A stretch of 64,000 nucleotides of DNA from Marsupella aquatica (GCA_973895155.1 OZ316899.1:5459241-5523240); one strand, 5' to 3'; positions 4,601-40,357 are shown, counted from the stretch's first letter. The notes: generated from the sequence alone by a model not told the origin. Numbers and translations: made by a program.

Positions 4601-6354
4601 GGAACCGGCCATCCATTTAGAACTGGACTCATTAATAGCCCGCCAGGTATTTTGGCCCAATCACAATAGCAGAACCTGAAGTACATCTCACAGGGTATAA
4701 ATGGACCCTCGTAAAGAAAAGAAATGCAAAAGGCGAGGTAACAAGACACAAGGCCAGACTGGTGGCTCGGGGATTCACTCAAGTCCCGGGCAGAGACTAC
4801 GACCTCACATACTCGCCGGTAATGGATGTCATTACCTACAGGTACCTGATTACATTTTCACAACGCCACCACTTATCCATGCATCAAATGGATATTGTGA
4901 TAGCGTATTTATATGGACACTTAGACAAAGTTATATACATGGAGGCCCCTCCAGAATTGGTGAAACGAGTCGAATACCACAGCAAAGGGAAACAAATCGA
5001 TAAAGCAGCAACTCCGAACCAGCCGGAAATATTTGAGCATACCAATTCAGCAATACTCCACAAGACTGCAGCAAAGATAGCCCTTAAAGTCCCTATACAG
5101 AATCAAAGAGACATCACCAGGAGAACTCGATTTGCAGTACAGGTGTTAAGATCACTGTATGGCCTTAAGCAAAGTGGCCTGACATGGTACAAACAATTTA
5201 AGGCCGAGATGCAGGCTATGGGATTTAAGAATGCAGACATAGCACCCTGCTTATTCCTGAAGCGGGAGAACAAGGAATTTATTATAGTAGCCATCTATGT
5301 GGACGATTTGAACCTGTTCGGAACTAAAAAGATTCTGACTGAAACTATTACACTATTGAAAAAGGCCTTCGAGATGCGCGACCTAGACCAGACTTCTTTC
5401 TGCCTAGGCCTGCAATTTGAGCACCTGCACAATGGCATTTTACTACATCAGTCCACATACATCAAAAAGATTCTAAGGCAATTTAACATGGACAAAGCCA
5501 CTGCAGTCAGATCTCCCATGGACATCCGCTCACTTGATAAAGAAAAGGATCTCTTCCGGAAGAAAAGCGAGATGGAGCCACTACTTGGCCCAGAAAAGCC
5601 ATACCTATTTGCTATAGGTGTCCTGATGTTCCTTTCGAACCAGACAAGGCCTGACATAGCCTTCGCAATAAACCTACTGGCATGCCATAGTGCCAAGCCG
5701 ACTATTCGGCATTGGAATGGCATAAAGCGTATTTTCCGCTACCTAGCAGGTACCATAGATCTGGGAGTATTTTACCCATCAGATGCTAAATACTTACTCA
5801 CTGGGTATGCTGATGCAGGTTACCTTTCAGACCCTGAGGATGCAAAGTCTCAGACCGGATACGTTTTCTTGATGGGCGAGATAGCAATTTCATGGCGAAG
5901 TTGCAAGCAAACATTAACTACTACATCATCCAACCACTCCGAGATAATAGCTCTCTACGAATCAAGTAGGGAGTGTATCTGGCTATGCAACGTTATCAAT
6001 CACATTCATGAGAATACAGGCATACCTACACTATCAACACAAATGGAAATTCACAAAGATAACAGAGCATGCGTTGAACAAATTCAAGCAGGCTTTATCA
6101 AGGGAGACAGAACCAAACACATTGCTCCTAAGTTCTTTTTCACGCATGAACAGCAAGGAAGTAGTATTCAAGTTAAATGGATACAAAACTCACAGAACAT
6201 TGCTAACATGTTTACAAAATCCCTACCTCCTGCATTGCATAAACAACATGCAATCTTAGTAGGTCTACGGACCTTAACTGAACTACAAATTAAACACAAT
6301 TATACTTACAGTGGAAATGCTCGTTTTTTGCTCAGGGGGAGACCCAATCTGTAG
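1692..6354 (+). pseudogene. copia gag-pol polyprotein (gag, zinc knuckle remnant, protease, integrase, RT, RNase H) with stop/frameshifts
   Basis: ORFs 1692-2018, 2073-2930 (FRCGTKGHIQKFC; IVDSGT protease), 2771-3130, 3213-4679 (HADVCGP, RVDNAGEF, NGIAE), 4762-6354 (SLYGLKQ, YVDD, YADAGY). Confidence 0.95.
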
Positions 6355-7295
6355 GCTACACCGCGAAGCTTGGACCAGCTCAACTCGAACAGATCTCAAA
6401 CAAAGATCACAGCAGACATGCTTATGGCAATCAGGGAGAGATCCGAACCCTCAAACAAACAGCCATTCAAACCTCAAGAATAGTATTCTTTACAAAATTT
6501 TACCTTCGATAACAGAGGGAGAAATGCAACCCAGCTCACCACCAACTACTTTCCGGATCGATGCTGCTGACTCACTTGAGAAGACAAACACCGAAGCCAG
6601 ACTAATTCAAAGAATTGACAACATCAGGGGGAGCATTCAATCACTCGTTCAAAGATAGTAACATTCTGGAGCAAAACGGCAGCTACATCAACACGACGCA
6701 AAGAATGACTATAAGAGAGCCACAAAAATAAATGACAATGTCAGGGGAAGCAATACGAAACCTCATCTGTAAAACAGCCAGGAACAAATCCCACTAGCTA
6801 CAGTTCGCCACATCCACTTCCCGACACTTCAATCGCGCAGAAGAGAATCGATCAGAGAAGAATTCCCCGACATTAGCAAGAACGACCACCAACAATGCAG
6901 TTACAAACACCCCCAAGCCCACTCCATGCGAGACGATCTTCATAGTGCAGCAGCCAACACCAATTGCACACCACTACCATCGCCAAGAATCACAGCGCAA
7001 GATATCCGCTCCTCCACGAATTACCAAGCGGGACCACAATGAGATTTTTAGGTCTTTACAAGTTACGATAACTTTACATTGTATAAGACTCTACTAACTC
7101 AATTACTCATAAATTAACCAAAATTATAAGGTTTTTAAGGATGGAATGGTAACACTCTTTCCCCCCAGCAAGAAAGGAGGGGGGGTTTTAATGAGGTTAC
7201 ATTCCCCCCAACCAATAAACCTTAGAATAAACATTTCACAATTAGAGTAGGCTAGAAGTGGGTGCAACAATCCTCCCCGAAATCCTGTTACACCC

Positions 7296-7304
7296 AAGGG
7301 GGAG
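7296..7304 (+). promoter_or_regulatory. Polypurine tract of copia-1
   Basis: AAGGGGGAG directly before the 3' LTR. Confidence 0.85.
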
Positions 7305-7462
7305 TGTTGTAACCTGAGTTAACTAGACCATAGATAAGGTTAACTAGGATTACGCCTACTCAGGTTAGGTCACGCTAACTGCCTAACCACCAGGCTATTG
7401 GAAAGCCTATATGTAAGGATATGGAAGGGAATGGAAATACAGTTGTTCAATCTATCACAACA
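7305..7462 (+). repeat. 3' LTR of copia-1
   Basis: Direct repeat of 1196-1353 followed by TSD AGTAC. Confidence 0.96.
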
Positions 7463-8469
7463 AGTACTTAATACAAAAGATTTTTTCCCCCTTCAAGTCT
7501 GAATGGATGAGAAGTTTGGACCCTTGAAGTGAAATTATTGTGAATGTTAAATTTTTGGTATATGTGGAAATAGATTCCTTGTTGGTGATGTTTCACATAT
7601 TCCTTAGTTCTTGATGCATAGTTGTTGGCATTGCCTTGCTTGAGCACGGGATGCTAAGAAGGATTACTTACCAATGACTTATGACTTCAAATTTGATGAT
7701 GATGGTGTCTCTTATTCGTGACACAAAGTACCGATTGGATACAAAAGTGATTGATTACTAGTCTCCACTCAGTACCTTGGAAGGAAAAGTTGAGACATGT
7801 TGACGGCATTTTAGTGATCATCCTAGTATAAGAATCATTTCCAAAAATGTTTCTTACAGATATACCACCTAAATCACATCAAATGAAGTTATGTTGAGGA
7901 GTCACCTTGGTTGTTTCCAAACTCCCTCACCATACCTCAAGATTTTTATTGTGTTTTGTTAATTGATTCCATTTTGTTATTTTATTTACAATGTTAAGCA
8001 AACATTTAAAACTATGCCTTGCTGAGCAACCATAGTAAAAGGCTCATCTTTGTGTTTTGTTATCTTACTCATTCATAAGTGCTAAATCATAGAAAATCAT
8101 TCTTACATGTTCTTTTATGGGAACGAATACCGTGTTTTGGATCTTAAATGTTTATTTATGTCCCTAGTGTGATACTACATGATTGGCTTGGGTTGCTTGT
8201 GTATCAACCTCATTGGCCACCTAGCTCATCCATCCATTGAATTTCCAAGTCAAGCTTCTCCCCAATCCTCTTTTGTTTGTCTGCAACTTGTTGTAATTTG
8301 GTCTTAGCCTCTTCTAGTTCATTTTTGAATTTATTTTTCTTTTCTGAATTTTTAATTTTTTTAGCCAGCGCCCGGCGCTGGTAATGCTAGCGCCCAAAGC
8401 TAGCCAAAAAATGTTTTTTTTTTAATTTTGTTTGGAAAATGTGATTTTTTTGAAAATATTTTTTGATTG

Positions 8470-10691: not shown

Positions 10692-11510
10692 GATTGTCAT
10701 TTTTCCTGGTAATAGTAATTTTTTGCTGGTAATAGGAAAATTTTTACTGGTACCAGGAAAACTGTTTCCTGTTTTCTGTCACGGGTGCCATACCCTCCCC
10801 AATCCTCTTTTGTTTGTCCGCAACTTGTTGTAATTTGGTCTTAGCCTCTTCTAGTTCATTTTTTAGCTGATGACATCCCTCGCTTCATCCTTCCACCTTC
10901 CCTTCTCCCCCATCCACTTGGCCCGTTTTACGTCAAAATGGGCCTTAGCAACAATTGCTACCCATGCTTCCTCCTTTAAGGTAGCAATACGCTTGGCAAT
11001 ACATCCACCAATGGTTTGATGACTACCTCATTTTCCTTGGCCAAGGTCACCTATGATTTTGCAACCTGATGCTCTTGTGTATCTTTCAGCTGGTTCATTT
11101 GTTAATATAGATTGGCAACCTTCCCCTTCTCCATTGCCAATAAATCCTTCTGCTTTTTAACCAAATGGTCAACTTTGTTCTTCCAATTGGCCCGGTGCTT
11201 CTTCAACTCCCTAATCTCAGCACCCATGTTATTTATTGCCTCTGACTTGCACCTATTATTGTCCAACCACATCATCAAATCCTCCCAAAGATTTAGAGGT
11301 GTTGGGACCCTCAAATTGACCAGCGTTGCTCTCTTTGTACATAGCTCATCCAAAGCATTTACAACTTTTCTCCATTGGCCTGCTTATCGGCCATCTCCCT
11401 AAGGCTCCTGATAGCTCTAACTTCTTCTTTTGCTCTACATTGTACAGGACCATGAGCCTACTATGCTCTGCCATGCACTTGTACTCTAAGGGAAATCAGC
11501 CTATTCATTA

Positions 11511-11856
11511 AAAGTGTATTATTATTTGATTTATGTACATTTGGGCAATGAAAAGTGTACTTTTGGGCTTGGAAAAGTGTACATTTGGCCAATGAAAAAT
11601 GTACATTTGGGGATAGAAAAATGTACAATTGGCCCAAAGAGTGTACATTTGGGCAATGAAAAGTGTAAATTTGAACATCAAAATAGGTACATTTGGCTTT
11701 AAAAGTGTACATTTGAGTACATTTGGCCTAGAAAGTGTACATTTGAGTGAAAAATGCATACATTTGGCTTAAAAAGTGTACATTTAAGTGCATTTGGTCT
11801 AGAAAGTGTAACTTGTAGTGCAACAAAGTGTACATTTGGCCTAGTGTACATTTGCC
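11511..11856. repeat. Left subterminal array of AAA(G/T)GTACATTT near-palindromes
   Basis: More than a dozen copies of (aaa)gtgtacattt/atgtacattt; three more at 24360-24418 at the right end; probable transposase-binding sites. Confidence 0.85.
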
Positions 11857-12105
11857 TACCAACTCTTCTTATAATCATTTAAAAGAAAGAAATGAATAGA
11901 AAAATATTTTTAATTATGTAGAAAAAGCAAACATTCATATTCATAATGATCAAAAGTTTAGAAAATGAGGAGATAGTATCAAATTAAAACTATTAGAATA
12001 GTAAATAACCAGTACGTAAATTACTATGTTTGAATGAGTGACTATCTTAGTTACATAAAAACTAGTAACTATCTATTTAATTATTATAGCTTCTAACAAC
12101 TAAGT

Positions 12106-15100
12106 CTACTTGTCCATCCTTTGAAGATAATTTTGGACAGTTTGTAGAACATTTTGAGGGATCTTCAAACCTCTGCCCGCCATGTTTTCTTCTTTCATTC
12201 CAGATTTAAAACCATACATTGCAGAATTTGCATACTGCCAATGTTGAGTATTCTCACCAAACCCTGGATCTCGTTCCCATGTCTTAGTGGACATCAAACA
12301 ATTTAGATACCGCGCACTCTCAGTCACATCAAGTTTAGAGTGTTTAGGCCTCCACCATTCAACTGGGAACATTGGAGCGTACTGTCGAGGCAGAGAAGGG
12401 TTTGTTGAAGATGTAGTTGGGACTTCATGCTTTGGGTCCACCAAACCCAAAGCTCTCACCAACCAGAAATGACCTCCACCATTTTTATTCTCCCAATCAT
12501 CCTCGGGTCGAAGAAATACAAAGTTTCCTTCACAAATATCCTGTAAAGGAATCCATCGTCCTTGTTCTCTCTTAGCTCGAGATCCAACAAATGGTGTTGC
12601 TTGATCTTCCATCTCTTCCAAGACCTCATTTTGAAGAGCCGTTATCTCTGCATTCTCCTCATCTTCACTTGGAGGACCACTTTGTTCCGGTTGGTTGACC
12701 TTGTAACCAGTGCCGTGGTTAGTCTTAGGCCAAAATCTGTTTTTCAAGGGAAATTGAGTACTTCCCTCCCCTTCTAGTGCGAGCCCATTTGTCAACAACT
12801 CCACAATTCTCTCCCAATATTTCACAAGAGGAAATCTTTCCTTATATGCTATAGATGTCTCATCAGTGCAACTCCTTCTAAAAAAATCAAGGTACTTGTT
12901 AAGAAATGGGATAATCTCTTCAGATTTTTTGTGTATCTCTCCAATGGATTTAGCTAAGGGCTCTCCACTAGGTAAAAGAAGAGAATTTGTTGTCAGATCT
13001 GTTGCCCAAATGCACCTTCCACCAACTGGAGCCCAAGCTTGCTTTACATGGGACTTATACTGAAATATTGGTACATTATCTCTCATAGAGAAAAGAAATG
13101 ATACAGGTTTTGAGTGACCTTGAATATCTTTCACCTTGAAAGTTTGAAGATATTCTTTGTAAGATGCAACTTCTTGTATCAATCTGGGAACTGGATGAAT
13201 GCTCTCGCATTCCCATACCTCTGCAACTTCTTTGTGCTGAACTTGATATGATACCTTTGAAAAGAGTGCATCAACATCTTCGTGCGTATGACCAACCATT
13301 AGAAAAGACATTTGAACAGTTTCAAATACTCCTCTACTCACAAGCTCGCTACAAAATGCCATGACAATCTGGTTTTTGTTGTCCTTTGCTGAATTATCCA
13401 TCTGCAATGTTAGGTGCCTTGGCAAGGGCTTGAACGATGGACTTCCTTGCTCTCCTTGCATGTCTTCTCCTTCATCCTCATCTTGTTGGTTTGGGACGGT
13501 CTCAGTCCGACTCTCAGCTCCATCTTCAGAACCAATATACCTATTCACCGGATATTCTTGGTTCCAAATAACCCGTCAAAAATGCTTCAAAGTCAAGTAG
13601 GGCTTGAAAGAAAGGTCTGTGACGTTCCCAATGAAGGCCATCCAACATGTCACCTGTCTTGTCTCCATTGTACTCTTCAAGGTCTCGAAGACACTTAGCC
13701 AAGGATGTCACTGTGAAATCGGCATCCTCTGGCCAAAGGCCAGTGACACTAAAGTGTGCATAAACTCCTGGATCCCTCCCGTGGGTCAACATCCCTGTGA
13801 GAGCAATAGGTAGCGGCATTCCATGACCCGAAAGAGATTTAGGAGTACTAACCATTTTTGGAATCCATGTCTTTGCTTGATCCATCTTGTCATGAATAAT
13901 GCAAAGATATTCTCCTGGGTGTTGTTTGGCCATCACTCAATGAGCGTAGTAAACATATCTACGTGACATTTGCTCACAAAGATGTTGCGCTCGCTTTTCT
14001 TCAATTTCAGCACGTTCTTTTTTCCTTCTTTCTCGCATCAAACTGTCTTTGTATTCACAACAAAGAGTACACTTGGCAAATGCACCATCTTTATGAAAAC
14101 TGAAGTTTGCAAATGAGTTGCTCCAGATCTTGTAGAGAGTATTCTCTGTGACAGGAGGAAGCCCTTCTTCCTTTATCTTTGTTCTCACATCTTCCAGAAT
14201 CTCTAGCTTCTTGTAACACGCCGGAAGACGGTACTCAATAGAGTCTTCCCATGTGCCCCTCCATAAGGCATATGAGGCATGGGCTCTGCATTTCGAGTCA
14301 AAAAAGCCTCCAACAGAGCTCGTGCATGCAAGGTATTTGCCCTTGTTTTCATCAAGCCCGTATTGCCATGGAACCCAATTTTGCAACCCTCCACATATCT
14401 CCTTTTGTAATCATAATATTTGGTGTGGCTAAAACCGTGGATAATTGCAAATGCATGTCTGCATACGACCATACCCTTAAGAACATGGTGTCCCTTATCA
14501 CAAACATCATCCTCTCTATAGTGAAAGAGGTTGAAAATGTGTGACGTTTTTGACTCGCTTGACATCCCATGAAATTCCATCCTAATATCTTCGATGTTTT
14601 CCCTTGGCATAATGAGACAACATTTTTGCTTGCAACAATTTTCTCTTTTCACATCATCAATTGACGCCTCTGTTGTTTTTGAAATTGCCTTGGTTTCCAA
14701 CAACCTCCTCTTCTTTTCATTCGGATCTACTTGATTCCTCTTGTTGAAATTGTACGGCCTTGAACGTAGTACTCCTCTATCACTTACATCCGCATTGAGT
14801 TCATCCCTATCCATTGAGTCCATCCTCTCAGAACCTTCCACCAAAATGTCTGACAAAATTTTTCCATTTGCAACTAGTTTTGTTGAATCAATCCGCCATC
14901 GAATCAAACTCACTACTCCCTTGTGGATGTTGGGAAAGTATTGTGCTGCCACGACATCTTTCACAACAATCCCAACATGGTCATCACCAAGAATTTCATC
15001 ATCAACTGCTGCTGTCACTTGAGGGACAGTGATCGTTCCAGTGGCAACCATTTTGGTTCGATCCAAATCAGTGTAGAGTTCAACCAACTCTGACATCCAG

Positions 15101-15861
15101 TTTGCCCGATGAAAATAGTCACACTTAGTGTCCGTGGTGTTCGCCGAACAAGACTGTGAAACAAAATTTGCCTTGTCCTTCTGCTTCTTAGAGGAAGATT
15201 TGTTGCTCCCATCAATATCAACATTCCATACTTTATTGTGGACGTCAACCACATCCCATAGAACCCAAGAGCCCTTTGCCTCTTCAATTGTTGCAGCTCC
15301 ACCATGTGCGTAAGGTAAAGTCTTACTACCATGAATCACATCTGTGACTTTTACACTAACCCGAGACTCACTGAGTAATATGTTATGACATCTCTCCATT
15401 GGATCGGTCTTGAAAACAACTCCAAAGGCCACACAATGGCTAGAGATAAACATTTCAACCTCATCGCCTGGCCTTAGGGTGGTCAAAGCATCCTCCTCTA
15501 CATTTGCAAAAGTATGGATGTTGTTATCTTTTTGAGTCGAACAACTACCAATACTGATGCATTTTTGAGTAATCTTATCCGCAGATCAATATGCACATGA
15601 CATATCCCAAATGACACATGAGTCAATGGCATCATGAAGATTTTCTGCCCTAGGCATTGGAAAAGGGAGCTTCCTAGTCTCACCAAAGGCCTTCTCAATG
15701 AGAACCCCAATTTGATTCTCTCCTAGCACAATATTTTGAACACTCTCTCGCGGATCTGTCTTTTGAACTGTCCCATTTCCAACATCGTAACCATCGATTG
15801 TCAAGGTAACATCATCGCCCCTAGAAAACCTTTGAGACATCCTTTTCCTATTTTCCTGCAC
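12106..15861 (-). pseudogene. Sola-like DDD transposase with N-terminal repeated small domain (TnpA/DUF8039-like, three copies) and Cys-rich region
   Basis: ORFs 15586-15861, 14203-15486 (VAFGVVFKTDP...KGSWVLWD repeats; CCKQKCC, VCRHAF), 13937-14386 (CTLCC...H), 13541-13936 (IIHDKMDQAK), 12106-13548 (QMDNSAKDNKN, GHTHEDVD); frameshifts/stops. Confidence 0.85.
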
Positions 15862-15904
15862 ACTGAAAAAAATGGATTAAATCCAAACTCATGCAAATTT
15901 TGAT

Positions 15905-16710
15905 TCAGACTACTATCCTCCAATTTCGGATTTGGACTAGGACCATCCGAGTCCGGATTTGGACCGGGACCATCCAAGTCTGGATTAGGACTGCAATCCT
16001 CCGAGTCTGGATTTGGACTCCGATCCTCCGATTCTGGATTTGGCCTGGGACCATCAGAGTCCGGATTTGGACCGGGACCATCCAAGTTCGGATTTGGACT
16101 GCAATCCTCCGAGTCTGGATTTGGACTACAATCCTCCGATTCTGGATTTGGACTGGGACCATCCGAGTCCGGATTTGGACCGGGACCATCCAAGTCCGGA
16201 TTTGGACTGCAATCCTTCGAGTCTGAATTTGGACTACGATCCTCCGATTCTGGATTTGGACTGGGACCATCCCAATCCAAACTAGGACTAGGACCATCCC
16301 AATCCAAACTAGGACTTGGACCATCCAAGTCCAAACCTGGACTCTGACCATCCCAATCCAAACTTGGACTTGGACCATCCCAATCCAAACTTGGACTCAG
16401 ACCATCCCAATCCAAACTAGGACTTAGACCATCCAAGTCCAAACTAGGACTCGGACCATCCCAATCCAAAGTTGGACTCGGACCATCCTAATCCAAAGTT
16501 GGACTCGGATGATCCCAATCCAAAGTTGGACTAGGACCATCGTAATCCAAAGTTGGACTCGGACCATCCCAATCCAAACTAGGACTTGGACCATCCAAGT
16601 TCAAACTTGGACTCGTATGACCCCAATCCAAAGTTGGACTCAGATGATCCCAATGCAAACTTGGACTAGGACCATCCGAATCCAAACTTGGACTAGGACC
16701 ATCCTAGACC
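15905..16710. repeat. Tandem array of ~30 27-bp units, each an imperfect palindrome TTGGACTnGGA-CCA-TCCnAnTCCAA; 108-bp higher-order repeat in left half
   Basis: 9-aa periodicity in spurious translations (DWDGPSPSL); direct reading of sequence. Confidence 0.93.
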
Positions 16711-17959
16711 AACCCATGATGTAATGGGAGATAAACTTCAAACATCTTAAGCTAAGAAAAATCCAAATTTAGGAAGACCCCGTATTTTACGGATCTCCCT
16801 AGATATGGTGTAGCCTAAAGTTTGCGTGGTCTTAAGGCAGACCCTAATGTCTACATACAGTTTCATGAAATAATGGAACCTTATATTTGAATGCATTAAC
16901 CTTATACTCACCTTAGTATTAAGATCTGGTAGAAGATGAATATCACATCCAAGGGGTATACATTGTTGTTTGAATAATGGTAAAAACTTCCCAGATTCTT
17001 GAAATACAAGCTATATGCCACTAAATCTTGGGAGTAAAAAACAAACTGAACCCTAAACCACACATGTCTGTAAAAGATAAACTGAGAGGACTCCAAAAGT
17101 CAAGAAGCTGGCTAAGCTGACCCAATGAAGGTAAGTGGCTCAATACATAACACTTTAAGAGAAACTCCCTCCGGATTACATGGAGCTTAGATTTGGGAAA
17201 CTAGAACAAGAATGAGCTCCGAAGTGGGCGTCTCCCAAATTATACCCTTCGCTCGAGTCGGCTCAACCGGAAATCGCGTGAAGATAAGGGTTGAGTACGC
17301 GTTCACCTTAGCTTGCGGACACACCTTATCTTCACGAGCCTAATTGCACGGGGACTACCATGGAAGGCTGTTAGGTAGGCAGGACATCAAGGAAGGAGGC
17401 CGTATGCAAGGTGAGGGCAACGGGCCGTACGCCAGAGCAGGCCGTACGCAGTAGAAGGAGGCAACTGGCCGTACACAGGCCGGGGTGAGGCAGGAGGGGG
17501 TAAAGGGACAGAGAGGTCCAGCCAGGACCTCATTCTCATTCTCTCACTTCTCGCTCTCTCGCTCTCTCGCTCTCCTCCTCACTCTCTCACTCTCCTCTCG
17601 CTCTCCTTGCTCTCTGCTCTCCGCTCTCTCTCCGCTCTCCGTTCTCTCTCTGCGTCCTTGCCTCCGCTTGCCTCCGCCTGCCTCCGCCTGCCTCCGCCTG
17701 CCTCCGCCTTCCACCTTCCACCTCCATTATTTTTTATTGCCCTAGATCGGATGCCTGCTAAGCCGCCACGTGTCATGCTGCCATGTGTTAGAAAGATGGA
17801 AGCGAATCGCGTCCTTGTGATGTCCTATGTGGAAGAAACGGAGGAGTTTGACCTCTCCTCTATGAGCGACAGTGTGGAACTGGCACTCAAAGACTCTAGA
17901 CAATTTCAATCACGAATCCCTAGTAAGTATCCATCACCTATCCTCCCTAAGTCTTAGAG

Positions 17960-18192
17960 GACTGGGACCATTCGAGTCCAAAGTTGGACTCGGACCATCC
18001 CAATCCAAACTTGGACTCGGACCATCCCAATCCAAACTTGGACTCGGATGATTCCAATCTAAAGTTGGACTCGGACCATCCCAATCCAAAGTTGGACTCG
18101 GATGATCCTAATCCATCTAAGAGATTGAATCCCGATTGTAGGAGCAAGTCTAAAACCATCTCAAGTTGGACTAGGACCATCCTAATCCAACA
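17960..18192. repeat. Intronic array of the same 27-bp palindromic unit (~6-8 copies)
   Basis: ttggactcggaccatcccaatccaaa repeated inside predicted intron 17923-18251. Confidence 0.88.
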
Positions 18193-19975
18193 AGAGTTAT
18201 TCGAATGTTTTAAAGGTTTCAAGTCTAACATGGATGACGTTTATGATGCAGGGAGCGATCTTGTTGTTTTCAAACCCGCGATTGCACCGACCCACTGCCT
18301 GGACGGATTCTTACTAGATGAGAGATCCCCACGCTTTTGATGGGGGCTTGAGTTCTCAAGAACCCCGCTTAATAATGAAGTGCCATCAACCATGATTGAA
18401 CTTGTTTTGACCTTAAAGTGCAGAGGAAATGATAGCCTGACTTTTGTTTGCGGACCTGTGGTCTCTGTTGGCATTGGAGGGAGAGGGATGAATACGGTCA
18501 TTCTCGAGATGCACGATAAGTCCTGTTGGGTTAAAGTTAACCTTCTGTCAAAGGCATACTCCTCTGAATTCAATGTCGAATGGCACGCAAGTGGGGAATT
18601 GAGCGTTTTGTCAATGGGATTTTTTCCAAAGACCTATGACACAAAGAAGTTGGTTGCCGGGGTAACTGGTATGCTTCCAGTCGACATTATGTATGGGTTT
18701 CAATATTTGAAACTCAATATGATGAAGCACCAAGGCAATTTTTCTTTTGCAACTACCTGGACGTTAAGCAATTTACTTGAGAAAGCTGGATTGTTATCGT
18801 TGGAGTCGGAGGAGCCTGGTGTTTTAATTGATAAGGATGTTGCATTTGCTCCCAAGTTTGATTTAGTCAAAGCAAAGCAATGGATAGAGTCTTTGTCCAA
18901 GACGAGAAAGTTTCCAGCGGTGAATACAAACCCTATGCCCGAGAAAGCGCCAGAGAAAGCTCCAGAACCTACAACAGAGACCGCAGGAACTACAGCAGCG
19001 ACCTCTCAAAGAGCAGTGGGAAAACAAAAACAAAGCCAAAGGAAACCTCCGGTTGAGAAGAAACTTCCAGTTGAGAAGCCGAGTTGAGAAGCCAGTTGAG
19101 AAGCCAGTTGAGAAGCCGAGTACGAGAAGCCGAGTACGAGAAGCCGAGTTGAGAAGCCAGTTGAGAAGAAACGTCCGGTTGAGAAGCCGAGTGCAAGTGA
19201 AAAGAGACCAAGACAGAAGAAGAAACATAAAATTGACAGTGCCATCATGGATGACACTACAGAAAACCTGACAGTGCATTCACAAGATGTGGACGAGCAG
19301 TTGGATGCTCCTGAGGAGAAGAAGGTCTTAGAAGGTAATGAGGTATTGCAACAAATGGAGCAATATTATACGTTTGGGATCAATTCGATATTTTCTATTC
19401 CTGTAGACAGTAGTTTCCCTGCGTCGGCAAGACTCTATTACAGAATGTTGAATGCATAACATGTAAAGGAGGTGGCCAATTCCATGATAAGAAATCCGGG
19501 GCATGAACCACACATAGCAGACTTGATTCCTTACACTACAAAACATAGAAACCTAATGCAGTATGACAACACAGAATCAGATAGGAGGGACTTTGTAGCA
19601 GCCGTGAAAAAGGGCGAGGTTCAATTCCTTGCCATTAGCGGTCAACATTCGGCTAGAGCAGCCAGATGGATTCGAGAATGGGCAAACAAGGATGCCAAGC
19701 TGACAGCATTGGCAAAAAAGCTGGAATTTTGAAAGTCAAGAATATTATCTCATCGAACACCATCGTCAATATTAGTTGAGCATTCAATGCGATCTAATGC
19801 GATCAATAGCACGATGGTGTTTCAGTCATGCTTCAAAGATATAGTCATTCATGCTAGGCGACAATTTGTGGAATGTGGAAAACCTAGCCGGCCAAAACAT
19901 GGGGACAACAAAACAAACGCTCAAGACAATCAAAAATTTCATGTATGAAGTGTTATTGCTTGATGGGTACAATAC

Positions 19976-20375
19976 CGTAGATTCATGCACATTCAGTAGA
20001 ATATTTCCACTGATATCGCCTAGTTTTGCGTTGGACTGGGATGGTCCCAATCCAAATGGATTCATGCACATTCAGTAGAATCTTTGTCCACTGATATCGT
20101 CTAGTTTTGTGTTGGACTAGGATGGTCCCAGTCCAAATGGATTCATGCACATTCAGTAGAATATTTCCACTGATATTGCCTAGTTTTGCGTTGGACTGGG
20201 ATGGTCCCAGTCCAAATGGATTCATACACATTCAATAGATTATTTTTCCACTGATACTGTCTAGTTTTGTTCTGGACTGGGATGGTCCCAGTCCAAACTA
20301 AATCATGCACATTCAATAGAATATTTCCACTAATATTGTCTAGTTCTGTGTTGGACTGGATGGTCTCAGTCTGCA
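19976..20375. repeat. Intronic ~80-bp tandem repeat (5 units), each holding the 25-bp palindrome
   Basis: Palindromes at 20031, 20112, 20191 (perfect TTGGACTGGGA-TGG-TCCCAGTCCAA), 20272, 20351. Confidence 0.92.
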
Positions 20376-23060
20376 CCTGAGTGCTATCAAACAATTGAGT
20401 TATGGAGAACTAACAGAGTTTCCTTTGCAATTGTAGGATTGGTTGGCTCTTGCAAGAATGACCATGGGAAGGAAAGATTGTCGAAATGTTTACTGGTTAC
20501 TGTTTGCGGACGATGCTCTTTTTGAGTTATGGAGTTTGGTATGCCAGTTGTGGTTGGATGGGAAACTTCCCGATGGAGCTGGGGTAGAAGGAAATGAGAA
20601 GTCTGAAAAAGCAATTACTATTGCCATGTTTTGTTGTTTTGATGGTGAGTTGATCTCACAACGAGACATCACAAGAATACTGACGCGGGTGAAGTCAGGA
20701 AAGGTATTGCTAAAGAAAGATGCCTCTAATAAATCAGACATGCCATCTATAGAGGAGTTGGCCAAAGATGTGAAGATCGTGCGGAAACTGAAGTCCCTTA
20801 TTGAAGACTACTATTGCACCAAGGATGCGGTGAATTTCCCGACAAATACTAATTGGGGGAAAGTAGTGGAGGTTCTTCCTACGCTAGCAATTGATTCAAA
20901 GTTCAGCAGGTGTCGAAGAGCCGCTGGCGAGGTCTATCTTGCCAACCTTTTAAAACCAAATCATACGCGGGATAGCGCAATCTTGCCAACGGCATTGGCA
21001 TTCCGCCTAGATGATATATACTACCAGAAATTTGGCGGAGGTTCATGTTCTCGGACCCTACCATGGGCTACATTTTTTAGCGACAATCTCATGAAGACCA
21101 TTGATCCAGAGTCATTGCAAGAAGCTCCTCCGACCTGCCCTCTTGCCATTGTTGATTTTAGCCGGCTTCCGCAAAAACAATGGACTGAAGCAGAGATTCT
21201 TGTTCTCTTTGAATACATTGTGGAGCTTCCACAAAATCCCACAATTGTTGTGACGATAACAGTTCATCCTCGACAACTTGCATTGAATGTCCATGGTGCC
21301 CTTCGTAAACTGGGACAAGAGAAAGCTTTGACCATTCACATTGAGTATGGGAGTTATTCTCGAGATGATCAATCGCACCCTCATGACTCATGTTGGGGTG
21401 GGGGGATTGAAGAAGTTATCTTTGCGGGGATTTCTCGAGATGAAGACGTCAATTGGAATGAAGTTTTCAAGCCCAACTATCCAAAGCCAAAATTCTTGTA
21501 TACTGCAAAGGATGTTGATTACAAAGTATGCAAGATCGACAAGGGAAAGGGGAAGGCTAAGGAATCAGATGAGGGGACACAAAACGACGACCTAAAAGTG
21601 GTTTTGGACCCGGAAGAGGCCGTCAAGATTATGAATATGGCCCCTCGATTTGAGACAGATGGCAGTCGCAGAGGGTGGGTTAATCCTCATGCCAAACCCA
21701 CGCGGATGATCCGAAGGATTATTGAATCCTTGTCAGAACCGGGAGATTTGGTTCTAGATTTTTTCTCCGGTGGCCAAGTCATGAAGACATCATTTTTTTG
21801 CAATAGGGAATGCTTTGTTTATTGTGACTCTCACTCCGAGAGGCATTTTGTGGAAGCTTTTGCTTCCTACCTTTGCGAGAGAGTTCCCTCACTTAAAGCT
21901 CATTGTGAATCACTTGCTGAAAATTCTCGACAATGGGCTACCATTGTTGCGGCTGTAGCTGTCGCTGTTGAATCCGATGGCTCTGAGTCTGAAGATGTTG
22001 CTGACAAAGTGGCTGAAGGCGTAGAGGCATCAAAGGAGGCATATGTCAAGAATTTGGATGACCGTGTTGGTCAAGGTGAGCCTTACGATGTAGATGATGA
22101 TATTGGACTTGCACCAAACTGTTCATCTGGTTTAGATGACATCCCTCCGGGGCCCAATGAAGTTCAAGTTGATGATAACTTGGACAAGGATGATCCCAAT
22201 CCAACAACGCCGAGAGGACAGATGGAGCAACTGGAAGGAGCAAGGGTTGATACGTTTGATCATCTTTCTTCAACCAATCTGATCAATGAAGGCGCAACGA
22301 GGCTCGAAGATTCAAATGAAGCTGAAACTAAAGAATTGACTCGGGGGGAGACCGAGGGGGAGACTGGCGGATTGCCTGACATTCCAATCAATCCAGGAGG
22401 AAATACATCAACGGCTGCTGACAACCAGGCAGGTGCTTCAACTTGTCCTGACACACTCTTTTCAGCTTCTGATGACAAATTGGTGTTCGTTCGTTCACAC
22501 TCGGGGAGTCCTATTGTCCTTCCGCTCTCAAAAAAGAAAGGAAATAGAGTTGGATCAACTGGATGGAGGTCATTGGAATGCGATGCACGATGTTACGTGT
22601 GGAAAAGTGGGCCAAATCGAGGCCAAGAAATATCATTGGATGCTGCTCCTTCAATTCTCAATAAGGAGGAGTATAAGAGTGGAGAATTGGGGTTGATAAC
22701 TCCTGTTTGGACTTCACCTTATTGGGTAGAACAAAGTACTTCAGATGTCAATTTTGAAATCCAACAGGAGCTTGGTGCTGACATGATTATTGATGAATAC
22801 GGATCTCTTATTTCGGAATGAAATTCAGCCTTTGACTTTGTATTTATTCATATCAATCTAAAATACTTCTCGGTCTCACAGAATGCACTCACTAATTAAA
22901 GTCTCCATATCCGTCTACACATTGTGAGGCTTCTAAAAACGGTATGTAGGTTAATTTTATTTGTTGTCAGCCATTGTCTTGTATTTTTGGACTGAGACAA
23001 TCCTAATCCAAAGTTCACTTTTGGTCTTTTCTCTGAGAATGGTGTTTGGTGCACTTGCAG

Positions 23061-24094
23061 AATCGAGACCTGGTCCCCTCAAGCGGAAGTTGCTGATTTT
23101 GGACCTTAATAAAATACTTTGGGATTCTATTGAATTCCAAAGCAAGGGCACATCCAGGAATATTGTCACCTCAAGTGGAGTGCATTGGGATAGATCAAAT
23201 GGAACTAGTCGCATGTATACAGAGAGGCCAGGGCTCCATGAGTTTCTAAAGTTGGTTTTTGACCGGTTTGACGTTGCAATTTGGACATGTGCTGGGATGC
23301 GCGAACAGTGAAAATGTTGAACATGATGTTCACAATTGAGGAGCGGTTGAAACTGAAGTTTGTATTCACACAAGTGGAAGCCTTTGACACAGGCATTCAA
23401 AGGCGTGACATTACAAATGGAAAGGCAAATGTGCTATTGAAGGATTTTCGGGTGGTATGGAGTGCATTTGGAAATCTATATGATGAAACCAACACATTCC
23501 TTGTGGATGACTCCCCCTTGAAGGCATTTGCCAACCCAGACATGACCGGACTATTTCCAGTTCCCTACACGCATGCCAATCGTGGAGACAATTTTCTTCT
23601 AACAATTCTTTGGCCATGTCTTGAGAAACTATCCCATGCAAGTGACATTTGTTGTTATCTTCTCCTAAACTCTCCAAAGTGGTCTCTATTGCACATTAAG
23701 AGAGACAAGGCAAAAAATGAGATTACTTATGATCAACTTAGTAAGAGATGTGCAACAAAAATTTGGAAGTCATAGTATAGGCATAGTGTGCTGGACCTCA
23801 ATAGCAATGAGATTCCTTGGGCTGTGAAGCACCGTATGTAGCTTACGTCCTGAGGTGGAACTTGACGATGCACTTGTCACCTCACTTGCTAGATCATTTG
23901 TAGGACGGGAATATTCAGGTTTGTATAGAGAAAATCCTAGACACTTTTTGCGGGAGATTATAGCAGTTAGGAACAACACCACCAAATTTCATCTCCCTGA
24001 AGATAAAGGGACTTGCAACCGTGACATTAGGGTAGATAGTAAAGGAGACAAAGGCACGTGCTCAAATAAATATTGTAAGGAGCACTTTGTTTAG
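23061..24094 (+). pseudogene. FCP1/NIF-family HAD phosphatase-like protein (Sola cargo)
   Basis: KRKLLILDLNKIL, RPGLHEFL, VAIWTCA, LLKDFRVVW, NTFLVDDSPLKAFANP across ORFs 22961-23311 and 23281-23775 (frameshift); tail 23855-24094. Confidence 0.8.
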
Positions 24095-25000
24095 AGATCT
24101 GACTCATGTTAAGCCCATTAGATAGTAAAAATGGGTGCCAGCCCTGGATATTCATTGTAAGTTTGGACACAATTGTATATAATTATTTTCACACATTATC
24201 AATCAATGGTCCTTGCCTGGGCTTCTTTGTGCGGAAATGTTTTTACAAGTATGATCTCTATCCCATGGTTCTTTGTGAACTAATAAGTAATATAATACTA
24301 TTATAATTAATATATTATATTATATTATATTAATATAATACTAATAAGATTTGGCCTATAAAGTGTACATTTAGGGTATCAAAAAGTGTACATTTGGGCT
24401 TCGTAAAGTGTACATTTGGGGACATAAAAGACATTTCAGGACTGATTTGTGAACAAAAGAAAATACACTTTTAATGAATAGGCTGATGGAACCAACTCCA
24501 ATTCTTGTGGGATGATTTCAAGTAAGGTTTTACCAACAATATTTGCAACATGCCTGACTAAGTCCATAGTGTATTCTGATGCTGGTTCCTCATACCAAAC
24601 CAGTGGGTGCTGTCTTTTCTCATGGACCCTTTGTTGTAATGGTCTAGGTTGGGGAGATACGCCCAACCCACTTGTTTGTCTTTCATAATCTCATCGGACC
24701 AAGGCCCTCCAGGTAGGTATTTTTCTTCCTCAACATTGGGTCCTATTACTGGATTATGCCTTTGTTCCCAAGAATGCCTTTAAAACTTTGATCAATTGAC
24801 TCCTCCAAAAGTTGGATGTTATGGCATTTGGGGGTGACAAGGGTGATTCTTGATATACCATGTTACTCCTTTTGGGCAAGTTGCCCAATTATGTATCCTG
24901 GCAATTGCGTGCTTGGCTTGAGGCCCATTTGGTCAGCCTGATATCCATCATACTTATCAATCCCCAAAGCCACCAACTCTCCTCCAGCAAATTGTGTGTT

Positions 25001-36181: not shown

Positions 36182-39100
36182 CTACATTCTCGTTCCCAAC
36201 TGCCTATCAAGTATGTAACGGACTTCTCCCAACGTTAGAATTGGCTGGCTACATAATGTCGAATCGAGCACATCCAGTTTGAACACATTCTTGAACACCC
36301 AATACACATGTTTGCAAGGCATGTAAGGCTTCCGATAAGTATGCCGACGGTAGAAATCCTTGCAGGAGCAACATGGGAAACAACATATCTGAACCCAATA
36401 AGAGGCGACTGATCTCTCATGTTCATGGGTCCGGATACAAAACTGTTTCCCCAACGCATTTCCACTCGTGATCTCTCTCTCTCCAATGACGCTCATCACT
36501 TCTTTTTCAGAGGCTTCAATTCTCTTCAAATGTGTTTGGGTAAGATGCACTCTTTGCAAGCATTTCTTCACGTTCCTTGAAGCGCACCTCACAGATGGGT
36601 CAGTTAGGTTGATCCTCTCTGGGAAAAGATTGACATCAATCCGTAACGCAGAAGGCAACGGTGCTTTGATTTCATCTCCACGGCCTTCGGAGAGAATAAG
36701 TCCTTGTTCTTTCAAAAATTGAATCTCTGCTCCAAAAAGATTGGTCCCTCTGGCAATTGGGAGATGTGAAGGAACATTGGGAATGTTCGAGACTCCTCTC
36801 CTTGTTGTGCTTTGGTGAAAGTGGTTGTTGGGGCAAAACCATATCTGATCGTTATAAGGTTGCCCCCTGAACATTCTGCATCCTCTCACGGAAATTGCAA
36901 CAACACCATCTGGATTCGGAAGGCCAACCTTCTTTACTCAATTTTGACATTCATCACGACTACCTCCCCGTCCAAGGGTTCCGTTACACACTGGACCCGT
37001 ACCCCGTTTTGAGGTCCGACGCAACTGCCAGGCACCAGGAGGTACTTCACTTTCCATTGGGGAAACTGAATGACAATATGCAGTCTCGACAAGTCTTGCA
37101 GGGGTCACTGGTGGGACAGAGGATCTCGTTGCTCGATGCAAAGGTGTGTCAATGACCACAACTTCCTTAGAGGCATCGCTTTCTGACAAATTATGGACCG
37201 CATCAATTCCACCGGTTGAAGGCGTAGGGGTATAACCACCGTGACAGCAAACAGCAAACAACAAACAGCAAATAGTTACTCGTAACAGCAAACGGGTGGA
37301 AAAAAATTTGGATTTGTTTTTGGAATTTTTTTTGGGGAAAAATATTAAATTTTTTTTGTGAGTCGATATTTTTTGCCTAGCGCCCGGAGCTAGTAATAGT
37401 ATCGCCTTACACTAGCAAAAAGTTGTCATGTATTTAAATTATTTTGAAAATTGTGACTTTTAATGACACATTTTTAGATTGTCTAGTTTGCTCGTAACAG
37501 TAATTTTTTGCTCGTAACAGGAAATTTTTTGCTCGTAACAGTAAATCTATTTGCTATTTGCTATCACGGTGAAAACCCTCAAGCGTAGAAGGCATTTTCT
37601 CAAAATCAGTGGAATGCAGGTTTCTCCTTTTCAAACCTTTTGTATTTGGTGAAGTAACAAGGATGGTATCATGCCTGTGCGAGTCTTCAGCCGAGACGTT
37701 CCCAGTTGCATGTCCTTTTCGTTTCACTGATTGAGTTACAACATCACCATTCAATGGAACGCTTCTTTCCAAATCAAACTCAGCAGCATTCGACAGGAGG
37801 AGATTGGTGGCTTCCTCAAAGAGACGCGGCGACCCCGCCAGGTCCGCCAATCTGAAGGCAAGCTCAAAAATAGTTGGGCCAGTTCCTCTACTCAATCCCC
37901 TTTTGTATGTAGTATAAGCAACAATTTGAGCAACCGCTCTATTTTGGTCCGTTTTGCATCCTTCAAACAGACCCACCTTTTTTTCTGTTGCCATGCTTTC
38001 ATTCCAGCATGCCTAGATTCCGAACCAGTACAATTAGGAATCATCCCAGCTTCTTCGGCACTCTTGCTCTGAAACATTGCACGCAAGGGTTTAGTACATG
38101 TAAGAAATTGCACACAAAAGTGGCAACACAATGGAAATAACAGTAGCGCCAAACGCTAATAAACTGATGATGATATTTTCATGTAAAGAACCGTTGAACA
38201 CAGAATAAAGGTAGTCCTTACATCACTCATAGTCCAAACGGATTATTAGCGCTCGACGCTACTCCTGCGGATAAGGAACTCTTCTATCTCACACATGCTT
38301 CACTAGCGCCGAGCGCTATTAATGGGACCATGCATCCTAGAGCAGCGTATAACTCACCAGTCTTATGAAGTTCCCCCATTGTCTCCATCGGACAACCCAC
38401 CAAGACAGCCACCCTTGCAGCATCCGAAGTTTGCCTGAGTGACAATTGCCAGACCTCCACCAGTCATCGATTTCCCTTGAGATTCGATATGCTTTCAAGA
38501 AAGTTGGCACATTCCGAAGACGATCCCACATCTCCTTGTGCTCTACGTGCTTTCCATCTTTCACACCTTCTCGGGAATGACGATGAAAAGATTGGAAAAA
38601 ATGAAAGGCATCTGATCTTTCTCACTCTGGGTCGGGTACACCGTCAAAGAACACGTTTCGAACAACATTCCAACCAGCCTGAGCATTGTCCGCCATGAAT
38701 CCCCAAATTGTAACATCTTGTAAACCATTTTCATCGGCAACCTCTAGCATCAAACGCCAGGCTCTCTCCAGAGATTTTGCATCTTCGGCCTTTAGCTCAC
38801 AAGTGAATATGGTGCAAAGTGCCCGGTAATGATGATCATATACATGGGCACTGAAAGTAAGCCAATCTGCCGTGCTCCGATGCATCACGTCAAAACTTAC
38901 CCATGAACCCTCTAACGACCCACCAGGTTTCATTCTTTGGAGCAGGTCCAGACCACTTCCGTCACCTTTTATGGTCATTTTAAAGATATGAGCACTCTCG
39001 TCCCGGCAGCCTTGACCAGGGAGCAAGAACCTATGAAGAAAAGGCAGTCGGATACACTTTTGCATCCTCACAAGAAATTCCAGTTCCCCTTTCCCCTTCT

Positions 39101-40357
39101 GATCTTGACGGACACTCCTTAACACGGATGCAAACTTCTGAGGAGATGCCACGACCATTAGGGACTCCCAAATTTCCTTCTCTTCTTCGAGAGAGATTTC
39201 TTCAACAGAGGCCTCAAAAAATGTATTCGTCAGTGTCTCAGTCGCAGAGTTTTTTTCCCTGCTGGGGATGCCATGGGGTTTGCAGTGAATCCCTTCTCTA
39301 GATGAGACCTTGCAACCTTTTCTTCCTCCCTCAAAAAGACCCGTCGACTGGGATGATTGTGAAATCCCATATGAACAGCTAGTCGCGACATGTGGGCCAA
39401 AGACTTAATGTCAACTTTTGCAGATGGATACATGTAGAACATTAGAGCAGGGTAGGCCTCAACGCACATCGGAGGTTTGGAGCAATGGTGACAAACAACT
39501 CCACCTTTGGAGATCAACTCCCCAACTCGGAATGGGCCCGAAAGTTTTGGGGTTCTTGCCCATATCTCATTATTTTGAAACTTGTTGTCTTTCCACCATG
39601 GACAAGCATTATTTTGACACTGCAGCGATCCCGTACATTGGACTTTCCCGAAATCCCACATTTTCTTCGGAAGAACATTTGAAGACATTTTCACAATCCG
39701 AGTCGAATAATAACAATCCTTACCACGATCCATATCTTTCAAACATTCACCTTTTGTGTTCACACAGTCTATCGGGGGTAACTCAAAAACCACATTCCCA
39801 TTGTAAGATGTGGGAAGACTAGGCACTACGTGATGAACAAAATCACTCCCCCTTATAAACCGAGACAATTCACTATGACCTTTGGATTTCAAGATTGTAT
39901 CCATTGCACTTTGCCGGTACGCAGTCAAAGGCACAATCTTTTCTCGATCCGCATTAGACTCCTTTTTAACCTCGGATGGGTAAACTGGAATCTTCTCTCC
40001 AAGAGTAGTTGTCGCTTGCTTATCATCTCCAGAACTTTCCGAAAGTTTGATGACATCGAGTTGAGCCGCTGTGGGAGGATGAGTACAGGAGGCCCCATAA
40101 TCTCTCAAAACAAAAACCTCATATTATTTTTGAGCCTCCAGAGTCCAATATCTATGACCATGAACAACATCGTAGAAAACTGGAGTCTCCCCCAAACAAA
40201 CCGATACTAACGATATCGCTAAAATAGACTCCTTGGCGACATCAAATCTCACTCCCAAATATTCCTCTAAAACATGCTTTGATTCAGATGATTCGAGGAT
40301 GGGAATTGTGATTACATCCCGAGTGTCCTTCCTCGTGACAACGATATTTTGAGCCAT
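36182..40357 (-). pseudogene. MULE transposase (GCM/WRKY-like Zn domain, DDE core, SWIM finger), intron 38069-38357, interrupted by a MITE
   Basis: KVQCTGSLQCQNNAC...CHHC...GFHNHP; SFDVMH, FMADNAQAGWN, DAFHF, GSESRH; CSCKDF...PCKH. Confidence 0.88.
37228..37580 (+). mobile_element. MULE-family MITE inserted in the MULE-B transposase
   Basis: Ends GGGTATAACCACCGTG / CACGGTGAAAACCCTC; 8-bp TSD AGGCGTAG/AAGCGTAG; removal restores KMPSTPSTGG; contains palindrome at 37378-37392. Confidence 0.9.

Follow-up and report, generated by a model that had tools for sequence, protein, structure and literature searches.

Arrays of a private palindrome in a Sola1-like liverwort transposon, putative recognition-site clusters for an element-encoded factor

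In the brown alga Ectocarpus, the 21.5-kb transposon Sola1-1_Ec32 carries, on the strand opposite its transposase, an accessory gene for a ParB-like protein with an N4/N6 DNA-methyltransferase (MTase), for which its authors suggest, as a proposal and not a demonstration, binding and modification of the element that encodes it (PMC12477816). In red-algal Plavaka transposons, tandem inverted-repeat arrays adjoin PAG3, a gene joining a ParB-like part to a 2-oxoglutarate (2OG) oxygenase, and have been interpreted as self-binding sites, again as a proposal only (10.1101/2025.02.11.637652). For VANC of the VANDAL elements of Arabidopsis, which are Mutator-like elements (MULEs), binding and hypomethylation were shown experimentally, and the motifs form fast-evolving tandem repeats (PMC5735166, PMC10398659); introns and upstream sequence harbor them, and VANC outpaces the transposase in divergence (PMC5735166). 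Here we describe a Sola1-like transposon of 13.0 kb from a liverwort, Marsupella aquatica, found in a stretch of 64 kb (the window, meaning the whole of that stretch; coordinates are counted from its first letter). It is bounded by terminal inverted repeats (TIRs), with the target site duplication (TSD) GGAA on both flanks (Table 1), and holds about 40 copies of a 25-bp palindrome in non-coding arrays. The reading that we favor, with moderate confidence, is that these arrays are putative recognition-site clusters for a factor encoded by the element, most likely its accessory protein with ParB/DndB-like and MTase-like parts, and not sites of transposase end-binding.

Palindrome arrays in the window and in related elements

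A scan of the window for the dyad TTGGACTGGGA-N3-TCCCAGTCCAA with up to 3 mismatches returned 22 matches (0.00 expected), all within positions 16148 to 23011, and a half-site scan with up to 1 mismatch returned 44 (1.8 expected), 43 of them inside the element. The original prediction, made by reading the sequence, had called the palindrome cognate to the Sola element; no copy lies elsewhere in the window, so this holds as to place, but the palindrome is probably not the transposase's end site, since it has been replaced between relatives whose ends are conserved. The prediction had also drawn a parallel with a different palindrome belonging to a MULE. That motif, TAGCGCCnGGCGCTA, has 18 sites at up to 1 mismatch, in blocks 37378-45832 and 53996-61121 and none in the Sola element, and the Sola dyad has no match in those blocks; within the window, the two motifs keep to separate stretches. 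A search of metagenomes for the dyad turned up three isolated matches, none in an array and none accompanied by sequence homologous to the element's proteins, which we attribute to chance; the window's species is outside that collection.

The copies fall mainly into three arrays (Table 1), and Tandem Repeats Finder returned the 27-bp, 108-bp and 81-bp periods where arrays had been reported: 27 bp x 12.4 at 15928-16263, 27 bp x 16.6 at 16256-16704 and a 108-bp higher-order repeat at 15908-16272 in array 1; 27 bp x 5.8 at 17959-18115 in array 2; and 81 bp x 4.9 at 19980-20371 in array 3. The predicted array of about 30 units 5' of the transposase is thus present, but only about 12 of the 30 units fit the dyad at up to 3 mismatches. 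The left 13 units are diverged and organized as a 108-bp higher-order repeat, with TCCGAGTCCGG as the right arm, and half of them lack the inner part of the dyad; the right 17 (array 1b) have the consensus TTGGACTCGGACCATCCCAATCCAAAC. Of 11 possible arm pairs, a mean of 7.5 are complementary in array 1 (4-8 in the first 13 units, 7-10 in the last 17), 8.4 in array 2 and 10.2 in array 3, against 2.7 +/- 1.4 in random sequence of like composition. CpG transitions account for just 10-20% of differences from the present consensus, and CpG decay was rejected on that count as the chief source of variation among units.

Because array 2 repeats the asymmetric array 1b unit TTGGACTCGGACCATCCCAATCCAAAC, both asymmetries included, we regard the two as one amplification that was later duplicated. 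Array 3 is built otherwise: each unit comprises one near-perfect dyad plus 56 bp, and its dyads are inverted (center TGG) relative to those of arrays 1 and 2 (center CCA). We rejected the idea that the 81-bp unit is three 27-mers, as the remaining 56 bp match the 27-mer at shuffle level (12 vs 11.8 +/- 1.2), and array 3 was amplified independently of arrays 1b and 2. Its dyads lie at 20031, 20112, 20191 (perfect), 20272 and 20351 (one base deleted), as predicted for an 80-bp repeat, here 81 bp, in the second intron of the original gene model. Of the claim that the motif was amplified with two periods, at least two amplifications with different units stand, whereas arrays 1b and 2 do not count separately. 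Some copies lie outside the arrays. The lone copy before the phosphatase-like gene and the degenerate copy in coding DNA were both recovered where they had been noted, the latter in an unalignable linker about 95 residues past the conserved block of the MTase-like exon. A further degenerate copy, at 13486, was compared with shuffled sequence, which reached 17 matching positions or more in about 5 hits per window and came nowhere near 21.

The arrays are non-coding, as had been claimed. Every reading frame is interrupted in array 1 (at least 2 stops) and array 3 (at least 5), and array 3 is intronic; the Calypogeia gene model P0002 (NCBI) likewise has its own array in the matching intron between ParB-like and MTase-like parts. 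One forward frame runs open through array 2, but it is closed by TAA at 17948 and offers no start codon ahead of the ATG at 18230. It is at the position of that ATG that the homologous proteins P0005 and P0006 begin, and they contain no repeat peptide. Array 2 had been placed in a first intron; the array is there, as six units and the copy at 18166, but the intron is only a putative one, since its proposed upstream exon (17751-17924) has no homologue in any relative compared and, by homology, the protein starts at ATG 18230. That the 27-bp arrays instead encode nine-residue peptides, LDWDGPSPS on the transposase strand and LDSDHPNPN on the accessory-gene strand, we consider very improbable. 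Periods of 27 and 81 bp are indel-free multiples of 3, a 222-amino-acid (aa) open reading frame (ORF) on the minus strand at 15801-16469 covers part of array 1, array 2 is open in frame with ATG 18230, and the exonic copy at 22180 yields LDKDDPNP on translation. This reading is nevertheless already contradicted: neither array 1 nor array 3 has any frame open throughout, array 3 sits in a homology-supported GT-AG intron, and four homologous proteins start past array 2 and lack such repeats (word search, 0.55-1.75x query length). Periods in relatives (35 and 74 bp in L001, 35-36 bp in L012, 33 bp in L002, and 28, 87 and 111 bp in Riccia) are mostly not divisible by 3. Substitutions by codon phase (7/20/21, driven by six hot positions and of low power) fit no frame.

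Relatives were found by word searches with the MTase-like exon, a relative's ParB-like ORF and the transposase, exons being handled singly. They comprise an element of Calypogeia fissa (L001, 1267-15178; TIR match 25/26, TSD ATAA), a second C. fissa element (L012), three loci of Riccia sorocarpa (L009-L011) and short contigs (L002-L005). Their gene order is that of the window. All relatives carry arrays, and every locus that covers the relevant DNA has dyad arrays or single copies at the window's places (Table 1); five relatives keep arrays at matching places (two C. fissa subfamilies, R. sorocarpa and two short contigs). The original prediction would have failed had other members of the family lacked arrays or had the arrays been translated as repeat peptides; in the relatives and sequences compared, neither is the case. 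Before the phosphatase-like gene, where the window has one copy, L003 has a lone motif, and L001, L012 and L002 have arrays of 74, 35 and 33 bp, respectively.

The places are conserved and the motif is not; each full motif is private, and the matrix of motifs against elements shows no cross-matches. The window-type motif has its 22 sites in the window and 0 in relatives; the L001-type motif, CGCCTCGAGA-N3-TCTCGAGGCG, has 25 in L001 and 1 in L002; the L012-type motif, GAGCCTCGATAC-N-GTATCGAGGCTC, has 26 in L012, 3 in L002 and 1 in L005; and the Riccia-type motif, GGGACGCGTCCC, has 9, 31 and 2 in the three Riccia loci and 0 elsewhere. Despite differing motifs and periods, elements hold similar numbers of sites (22, 25, 26 and 31). 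L001, L012, L002 and L005 have the outer arms CCTCGA-N7-TCGAGG in common and differ in the inner 7 bp, GACGATC in 11 L001 sites and TACCGTA in 18 L012 sites, a distinction kept over all four arrays. L003, which is nearer than any other relative to the window in its MTase-like exon (46% identity), differs again: its motif, GGGTTGATCTAGTATAGACCC, is found where the intron ends, ahead of the phosphatase gene and within the unalignable MTase-like linker, here about 93 residues past the conserved block against about 95 for the window's exonic dyad. The motif has thus been replaced jointly at all positions. Since the window's ParB core is nearer to that of L001 (56% identity) than to those of L002 and L005 (45-47%), the CCTCGA class is probably ancestral, and the window's lineage probably switched the outer arms while keeping the inner GACCATC (6/7 with L001).

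Some relatives depart from the common plan. The Riccia copy at L009 7059-12523 bears a transposase and nine GGGACGCGTCCC sites, with no ParB or MTase homology detected within 10 kb, and it may be a derivative relying on an accessory protein in trans. At Riccia L011 (15330-19219), the accessory genes lie tail to tail downstream of the transposase, not head to head; this locus has two GGGACGCGTCCC sites and, in a transposase intron, another dyad array, ATCTCGAAGC...GCTTCGAGAT (28 bp x 3). In L002, an extra 198-aa ORF lies at 67-663, between palindromes upstream of the ParB-like gene; it has a very weak F-box-like match (E = 0.17) and no counterpart in the window.

Candidate readers of the palindrome and competing explanations

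We asked which protein might read the palindrome by comparing what changes with it. Between the window and L001, the palindrome is wholly different, while the subterminal motif AAAGTG(T/G)ACATTTGGGC is conserved, the TIRs match at 20/26 positions and the transposases are 63% identical; the accessory proteins are more diverged, at 30% identity in the N-terminal domain of the ParB gene and 37% in the MTase-like part. Between L001 and L012, within one genome, the transposase core is 83-86% identical and the ends about 85% over 380 bp, whereas the ParB-like and MTase-like parts are each only 49% identical. Because the ends are conserved where the palindrome has been replaced, these alignments argue that the palindrome is not the transposon's end-binding site. 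A host factor is disfavored as its reader, since it would have no need of private variants in co-resident subfamilies. Taken together, end conservation and the pattern of divergence point to the accessory gene. Within it, the MTase-like domain appears to be an equally good candidate reader: enzymes of the N6_N4 MTase family typically recognize short palindromes, and the CCTCGA-class arms contain TCGA or CTCGAG.

Several observations weigh against an accessory-protein reader. The N-terminal region of the transposase also diverges, being only 51-61% identical between L001 and L012, and the transposase is for this reason a possible reader as well. Riccia L009 keeps its palindromes though ParB and MTase homology is undetected nearby. 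Domain-by-domain identities, calculated with two adjacent same-frame ParB-like pieces (an in-frame stop between them) joined end to end and stops set to X, show no single domain that tracks motif class, the N-terminal domain being fast-evolving everywhere. Nor is selection required for tandem palindromes to expand. Pfam and PDB sequence searches of the element's proteins recognized no sequence-specific DNA-binding domain, and neither Pfam nor PDB sequence/profile searches recovered ParB. The ParB label draws on a sub-threshold DndB match (E = 0.052, P0006), similarity of Atlas features (scores of 0.96 for DUF3723 and 0.90 for ParB_N) and the literature on algal elements, and is itself to be read as sub-threshold; the protein also has the motif FxAISGQHSAxAA, which we take to resemble DGQHR. 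AlphaFold models are poor (pLDDT 46 for P0005 and 51 for the L012 ORF), and with such models Foldseek found nothing in PDB at E 0.001 or better for the ParB-like proteins. The conserved N-terminal domain (window 18380-18900; L012 4279-5502, minus strand, residues ~25-175) is predicted to be a beta-sandwich with a helix. An Atlas search gave it no usable hit and Pfam no family at E 0.01; VIA-align found it weakly PH/PTB-like (Z ~5), from a mediocre model.

The possibility that the palindromes are internal sites of the transposase, read for example by its variable N-terminal region in autoregulation of the divergent promoter or in assembly of a transposition complex, seems unlikely to us, but it accounts for some of these observations. 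Array 1 adjoins the transposase start, Riccia L010 has arrays in the introns of its transposase gene and others downstream of it, L009 has palindromes with no detectable ParB/MTase gene, and the N-terminal region changes along with the motif between the Calypogeia subfamilies. However, the ends bear their own conserved motif and TIR, unchanged where the palindrome was replaced, the termini and their vicinity are free of the palindrome, and most sites in the window, L001 and L012 surround the accessory gene or fall inside it. Position bears likewise on the quite unlikely case that the arrays are functionless palindromic minisatellites, generated through slippage and unequal exchange, with gene conversion homogenizing the units. 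Copy number and period do vary freely (27/81, 35/74, 33 and 28/87/111 bp), array 2 arose by duplication of part of array 1b, higher-order repeats are present, and the window copy is dead with its arrays decaying. Neutral change would nonetheless have had to keep four places across lineages whose accessory proteins are merely 30-50% identical, to swap the motif jointly at four to six separate places, an exonic site included, and to preserve dyad symmetry through every replacement with site number held at 22-31.

A further reading, which we judge improbable, is that the arrays act as nucleic-acid structures, either hairpin or self-complementary RNA feeding small-RNA pathways or DNA cruciforms. 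RNA of array 3 folds far beyond shuffled sequence (-131.7 kcal/mol, z = -5.5); transcription is likely, with array 3 intronic and arrays 1 and 2 in probable leaders; and a whole tandem palindrome array is self-complementary, its junction dyads pairing at 5-9 of 11 positions. Yet such a fold is expected of any dyad array, and the array 1b/2 unit is imperfect (9/11 pairs), with C.A and C.C mismatches (accessory-gene strand) left unrepaired. The most variable arm position is the mirror pair 8/18, and these two positions show no covariation. RNA silencing, if triggered, would harm the element. The conserved places, the joint replacement of the motif and the steady number of sites tell against a structural role as they do against neutrality. 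Neither structure nor neutrality accounts for the private inner sequences that persist in co-resident subfamilies; hairpins in particular leave the distinct inner sequences over four arrays of the two subfamilies unexplained, because any palindrome would serve.

The arrays flank the presumed divergent promoter region, fill the accessory-gene intron and precede the phosphatase-like gene. If they are recognition sites for the accessory protein, as we favor, the protein of an intact copy would load on many sites across its own family's regulatory DNA, and on no other element. Loaded protein might then mark or protect its own DNA, for example by anti-silencing or by self-marking of chromatin or DNA. 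More tentatively, we suggest as a possible scheme a private addressing system made from prokaryote-type modules. A ParB/DndB-like and MTase-like protein would read a two-part palindrome, with clade-wide outer arms and a subfamily-private inner 7 bp, present in 20-30 copies round promoters and introns; co-evolution of protein and site would end cross-reaction between L001 and L012, and the system would be an independently arisen land-plant counterpart of VANC.

Should these be true cognate sites, land-plant cut-and-paste transposons would have repeatedly built self-recognition from an accessory protein and amplified private sites, and "who I am" would be separated from "how I move." L001 and L012, whose chief differences are the accessory proteins and the inner 7 bp of the site, offer a natural pair for reciprocal binding. 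For annotation, the arrays serve as a landmark by which the family can be recognized, and their 27-bp period can trick gene finders into calling repeat peptides.

Genes and ends of the element

Table 1. Features of the Marsupella aquatica element, in window coordinates, with corresponding features of related loci
Feature	Position	Strand	Description	In relatives
Left TIR	11495-11528		inverted pair with 24454-24487, 34 nt, 91% complementary; GGAA just outside	homologous to Calypogeia TIR
Left subterminal repeats AAGTGTACATTTGG	11553-11860		~11 copies; share nothing with the palindrome	motif at both ends of Calypogeia L001
Transposase gene (DUF7869, Sola-type), broken	12106-15861	-	Pfam DUF7869 E = 8.6e-34	63% identical to Calypogeia transposase
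Degenerate dyad	13486-13510		transposase coding linker; 21/25 positions fit degenerate consensus	
Array 1	15905-16714		5' of transposase start; 30 units of exactly 27 bp, no indels, cut in register	L012 7215-7596; L001 within 5733-8469 (region shared with the place upstream of ParB)
CT-rich low-complexity tract	17540-17725		between arrays 1 and 2	GA-rich tract (opposite orientation), Calypogeia L012 5907-6265, between two upstream arrays
Array 2	17957-18190		directly upstream of ParB-like start codon; 6 x 27 bp and separate copy at 18166	L012 5572-5680; L001 5733-8469 region; L002 753
ParB/DndB-like part of accessory gene, pseudogene	18230-19943	+	single frame, six in-frame stops	
GT-AG intron between ParB-like and MTase-like parts	19944-20436	+	GTATGA at 19944, AG ending 20436	
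Array 3	19980-20371		81 bp x 4.9; occupies 80% of the ParB/MTase intron	L012 3723-3903; L001 10170-10262; L002 2560-2970; L005 contig end; L003 1-57; Riccia L010 3411-3607
MTase-like exon (N6_N4_Mtase)	20437-22821	+	PF01555 28.7 bits vs cutoff 26.7	homologues P0001-P0004
Exonic dyad	22180-22204		inside 792-aa ORF, MTase-like; 3 mismatches; reads LDKDDPNP	
Lone dyad	22987-23011		between MTase-like stop and phosphatase-like gene, ~28 bp 5' of its start codon	L012 1167-1413; L001 13049-13441; L002 5660-5859; L003 3120
CTD (C-terminal domain)-phosphatase-like (NIF) gene	23039-23775	+	Pfam NIF E = 9.7e-06	NIF E = 2.3e-15 in L003
Right subterminal repeats and right TIR	24358-24487		3 copies, strand as on left; TIR 24454-24487	

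The best protein matches to the element's genes come from the liverworts C. fissa and R. sorocarpa, and 156 DUF7869 homologues were found in liverworts. We take the DUF7869 transposase to be of Sola1 type; a 4-bp TSD is a trait of the Sola1 superfamily, and both the window copy and Calypogeia L001 have one, together with TIRs. The window's transposase is broken by a CGA>TGA nonsense codon at 13937-13939 and a frame change near 13545. Programmed readthrough of its in-frame stops was rejected, as the stop codons sit elsewhere in each copy. Its N terminus (window 14203-15861, minus strand; L001 4521-5457) holds a repeated domain of about 70 residues, and a 91-aa ORF at 15586-15861 matches four separate L001 stretches and has no Pfam match.

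The ParB-like part aligns with a 572-aa ORF of L002 in one tblastn high-scoring segment pair (18299-19912), and homology puts its start at ATG 18230, 38 bp past array 2. Three of its six in-frame stops come from a 12-13-bp tandem repeat, AGTTGAGAAGCCG x 7.8, at 19069-19168 in a Lys/Pro-rich linker. Another stop, TGA after ...KL(E/R)F, stands at matching codons in the window (19730-19732) and L001 (9917-9919), with conserved in-frame sequence beyond it; L012 and L002 have Arg at that codon, and P0002 begins at a downstream Met. Given the Arg codon of L012, the TGA is more simply, and probably correctly, read as parallel CGA>TGA decay; a split into two cistrons is a less likely possibility. The intron is supported by P0002, whose residues 1-49 align at 19814-19960 and residues 44-806 at 20437-22809. 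In P0001, P0002, P0003 and L012, the PF01555 match covers the same short region and falls below the cutoff. It is restricted to the SAM-binding (S-adenosylmethionine) motif region, and the MTase label stands for sequence likeness, with catalysis putative. The CT-rich tract between arrays 1 and 2 is presumed to be a divergent promoter or leader region. As a whole, the window copy is a dead relic and could at most serve as a target in trans.

The subterminal repeats AAGTGTACATTTGG are the likely end-binding sites of the transposase. These repeats, AAGTG(T/G)ACATTTGG, run direct and not inverted at the two ends (window 11553-11860 and 24361-24420; L001 1346-1404 and 15029-15065). An outer inverted-repeat pair (10692-10795/25001-25110; 83 nt at 90% plus 30 nt at 93%) surrounds the Sola copy at distances of about 700 and 500 bp of other DNA, so that the copy seems to be nested in another TIR-bearing element.

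Comparison with known systems

In geometry, the arrays resemble bacterial partition sites. The sopC site of the F plasmid consists of tandem 43-bp units, each with a short inverted repeat bound by SopB, and parS is likewise a site for a ParB-family protein; there, as here, one inverted repeat occurs per tandem unit, sites are many, and specificity is private to each system. Unlike ParB-parS and SopB-sopC, the liverwort element is a eukaryotic nuclear transposon, for which segregation is not an expected function. Pfam detected neither a helix-turn-helix (HTH) domain nor a ParA partner in its proteins, and the fold search, on poor models, gave only the weak PH/PTB-like domain. The element thus resembles partition systems at most in working and is not a member of them.

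The likeness to VANC targets, drawn in the original prediction, holds in form. In both cases, element-specific tandem motifs occupy accessory-gene introns and the region upstream of the transposase, motifs turn over quickly between subfamilies, and divergence is greater in the accessory protein than in the transposase (PMC5735166). The VANC motifs differ in being 9-bp non-palindromic words, and the DUF1985/DUF287 proteins are unrelated: neither domain is among the Pfam matches of any ORF of the element, whose transposase is of the DUF7869 and not the MULE kind. Binding and hypomethylation are experimental findings for VANC, and binding is a putative trait of the liverwort protein. Plavaka shares with it a ParB assignment from weak profile evidence and inverted-repeat arrays beside the ParB-like gene, and differs in transposon superfamily and in its effector, a 2OG oxygenase in place of an MTase-like part. 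The Plavaka preprint contains nothing on motif turnover, intron-relative positions or private motifs in co-resident subfamilies (10.1101/2025.02.11.637652).

Ectocarpus Sola1 was, like the liverwort element, assigned to its superfamily by a DUF7869 transposase and a 4-bp TSD, and its accessory gene, too, runs divergently from the transposase, with a ParB-like part followed by a PF01555 MTase-like part. The accessory genes are likened here by architecture; the hosts differ (a brown alga in the one case), the liverwort elements are 13-14 kb and carry an extra CTD-phosphatase-like gene, and palindrome arrays are not described for the Ectocarpus element (PMC12477816). We found no paper combining liverworts, DNA transposons, ParB and methyltransferase. 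New here are the four conserved array places, the matrix of private motifs, which includes two subfamilies of one genome, and the finding that palindrome and transposon ends are decoupled. The liverwort element is a land-plant addition to a kind of transposon already sketched for algae.

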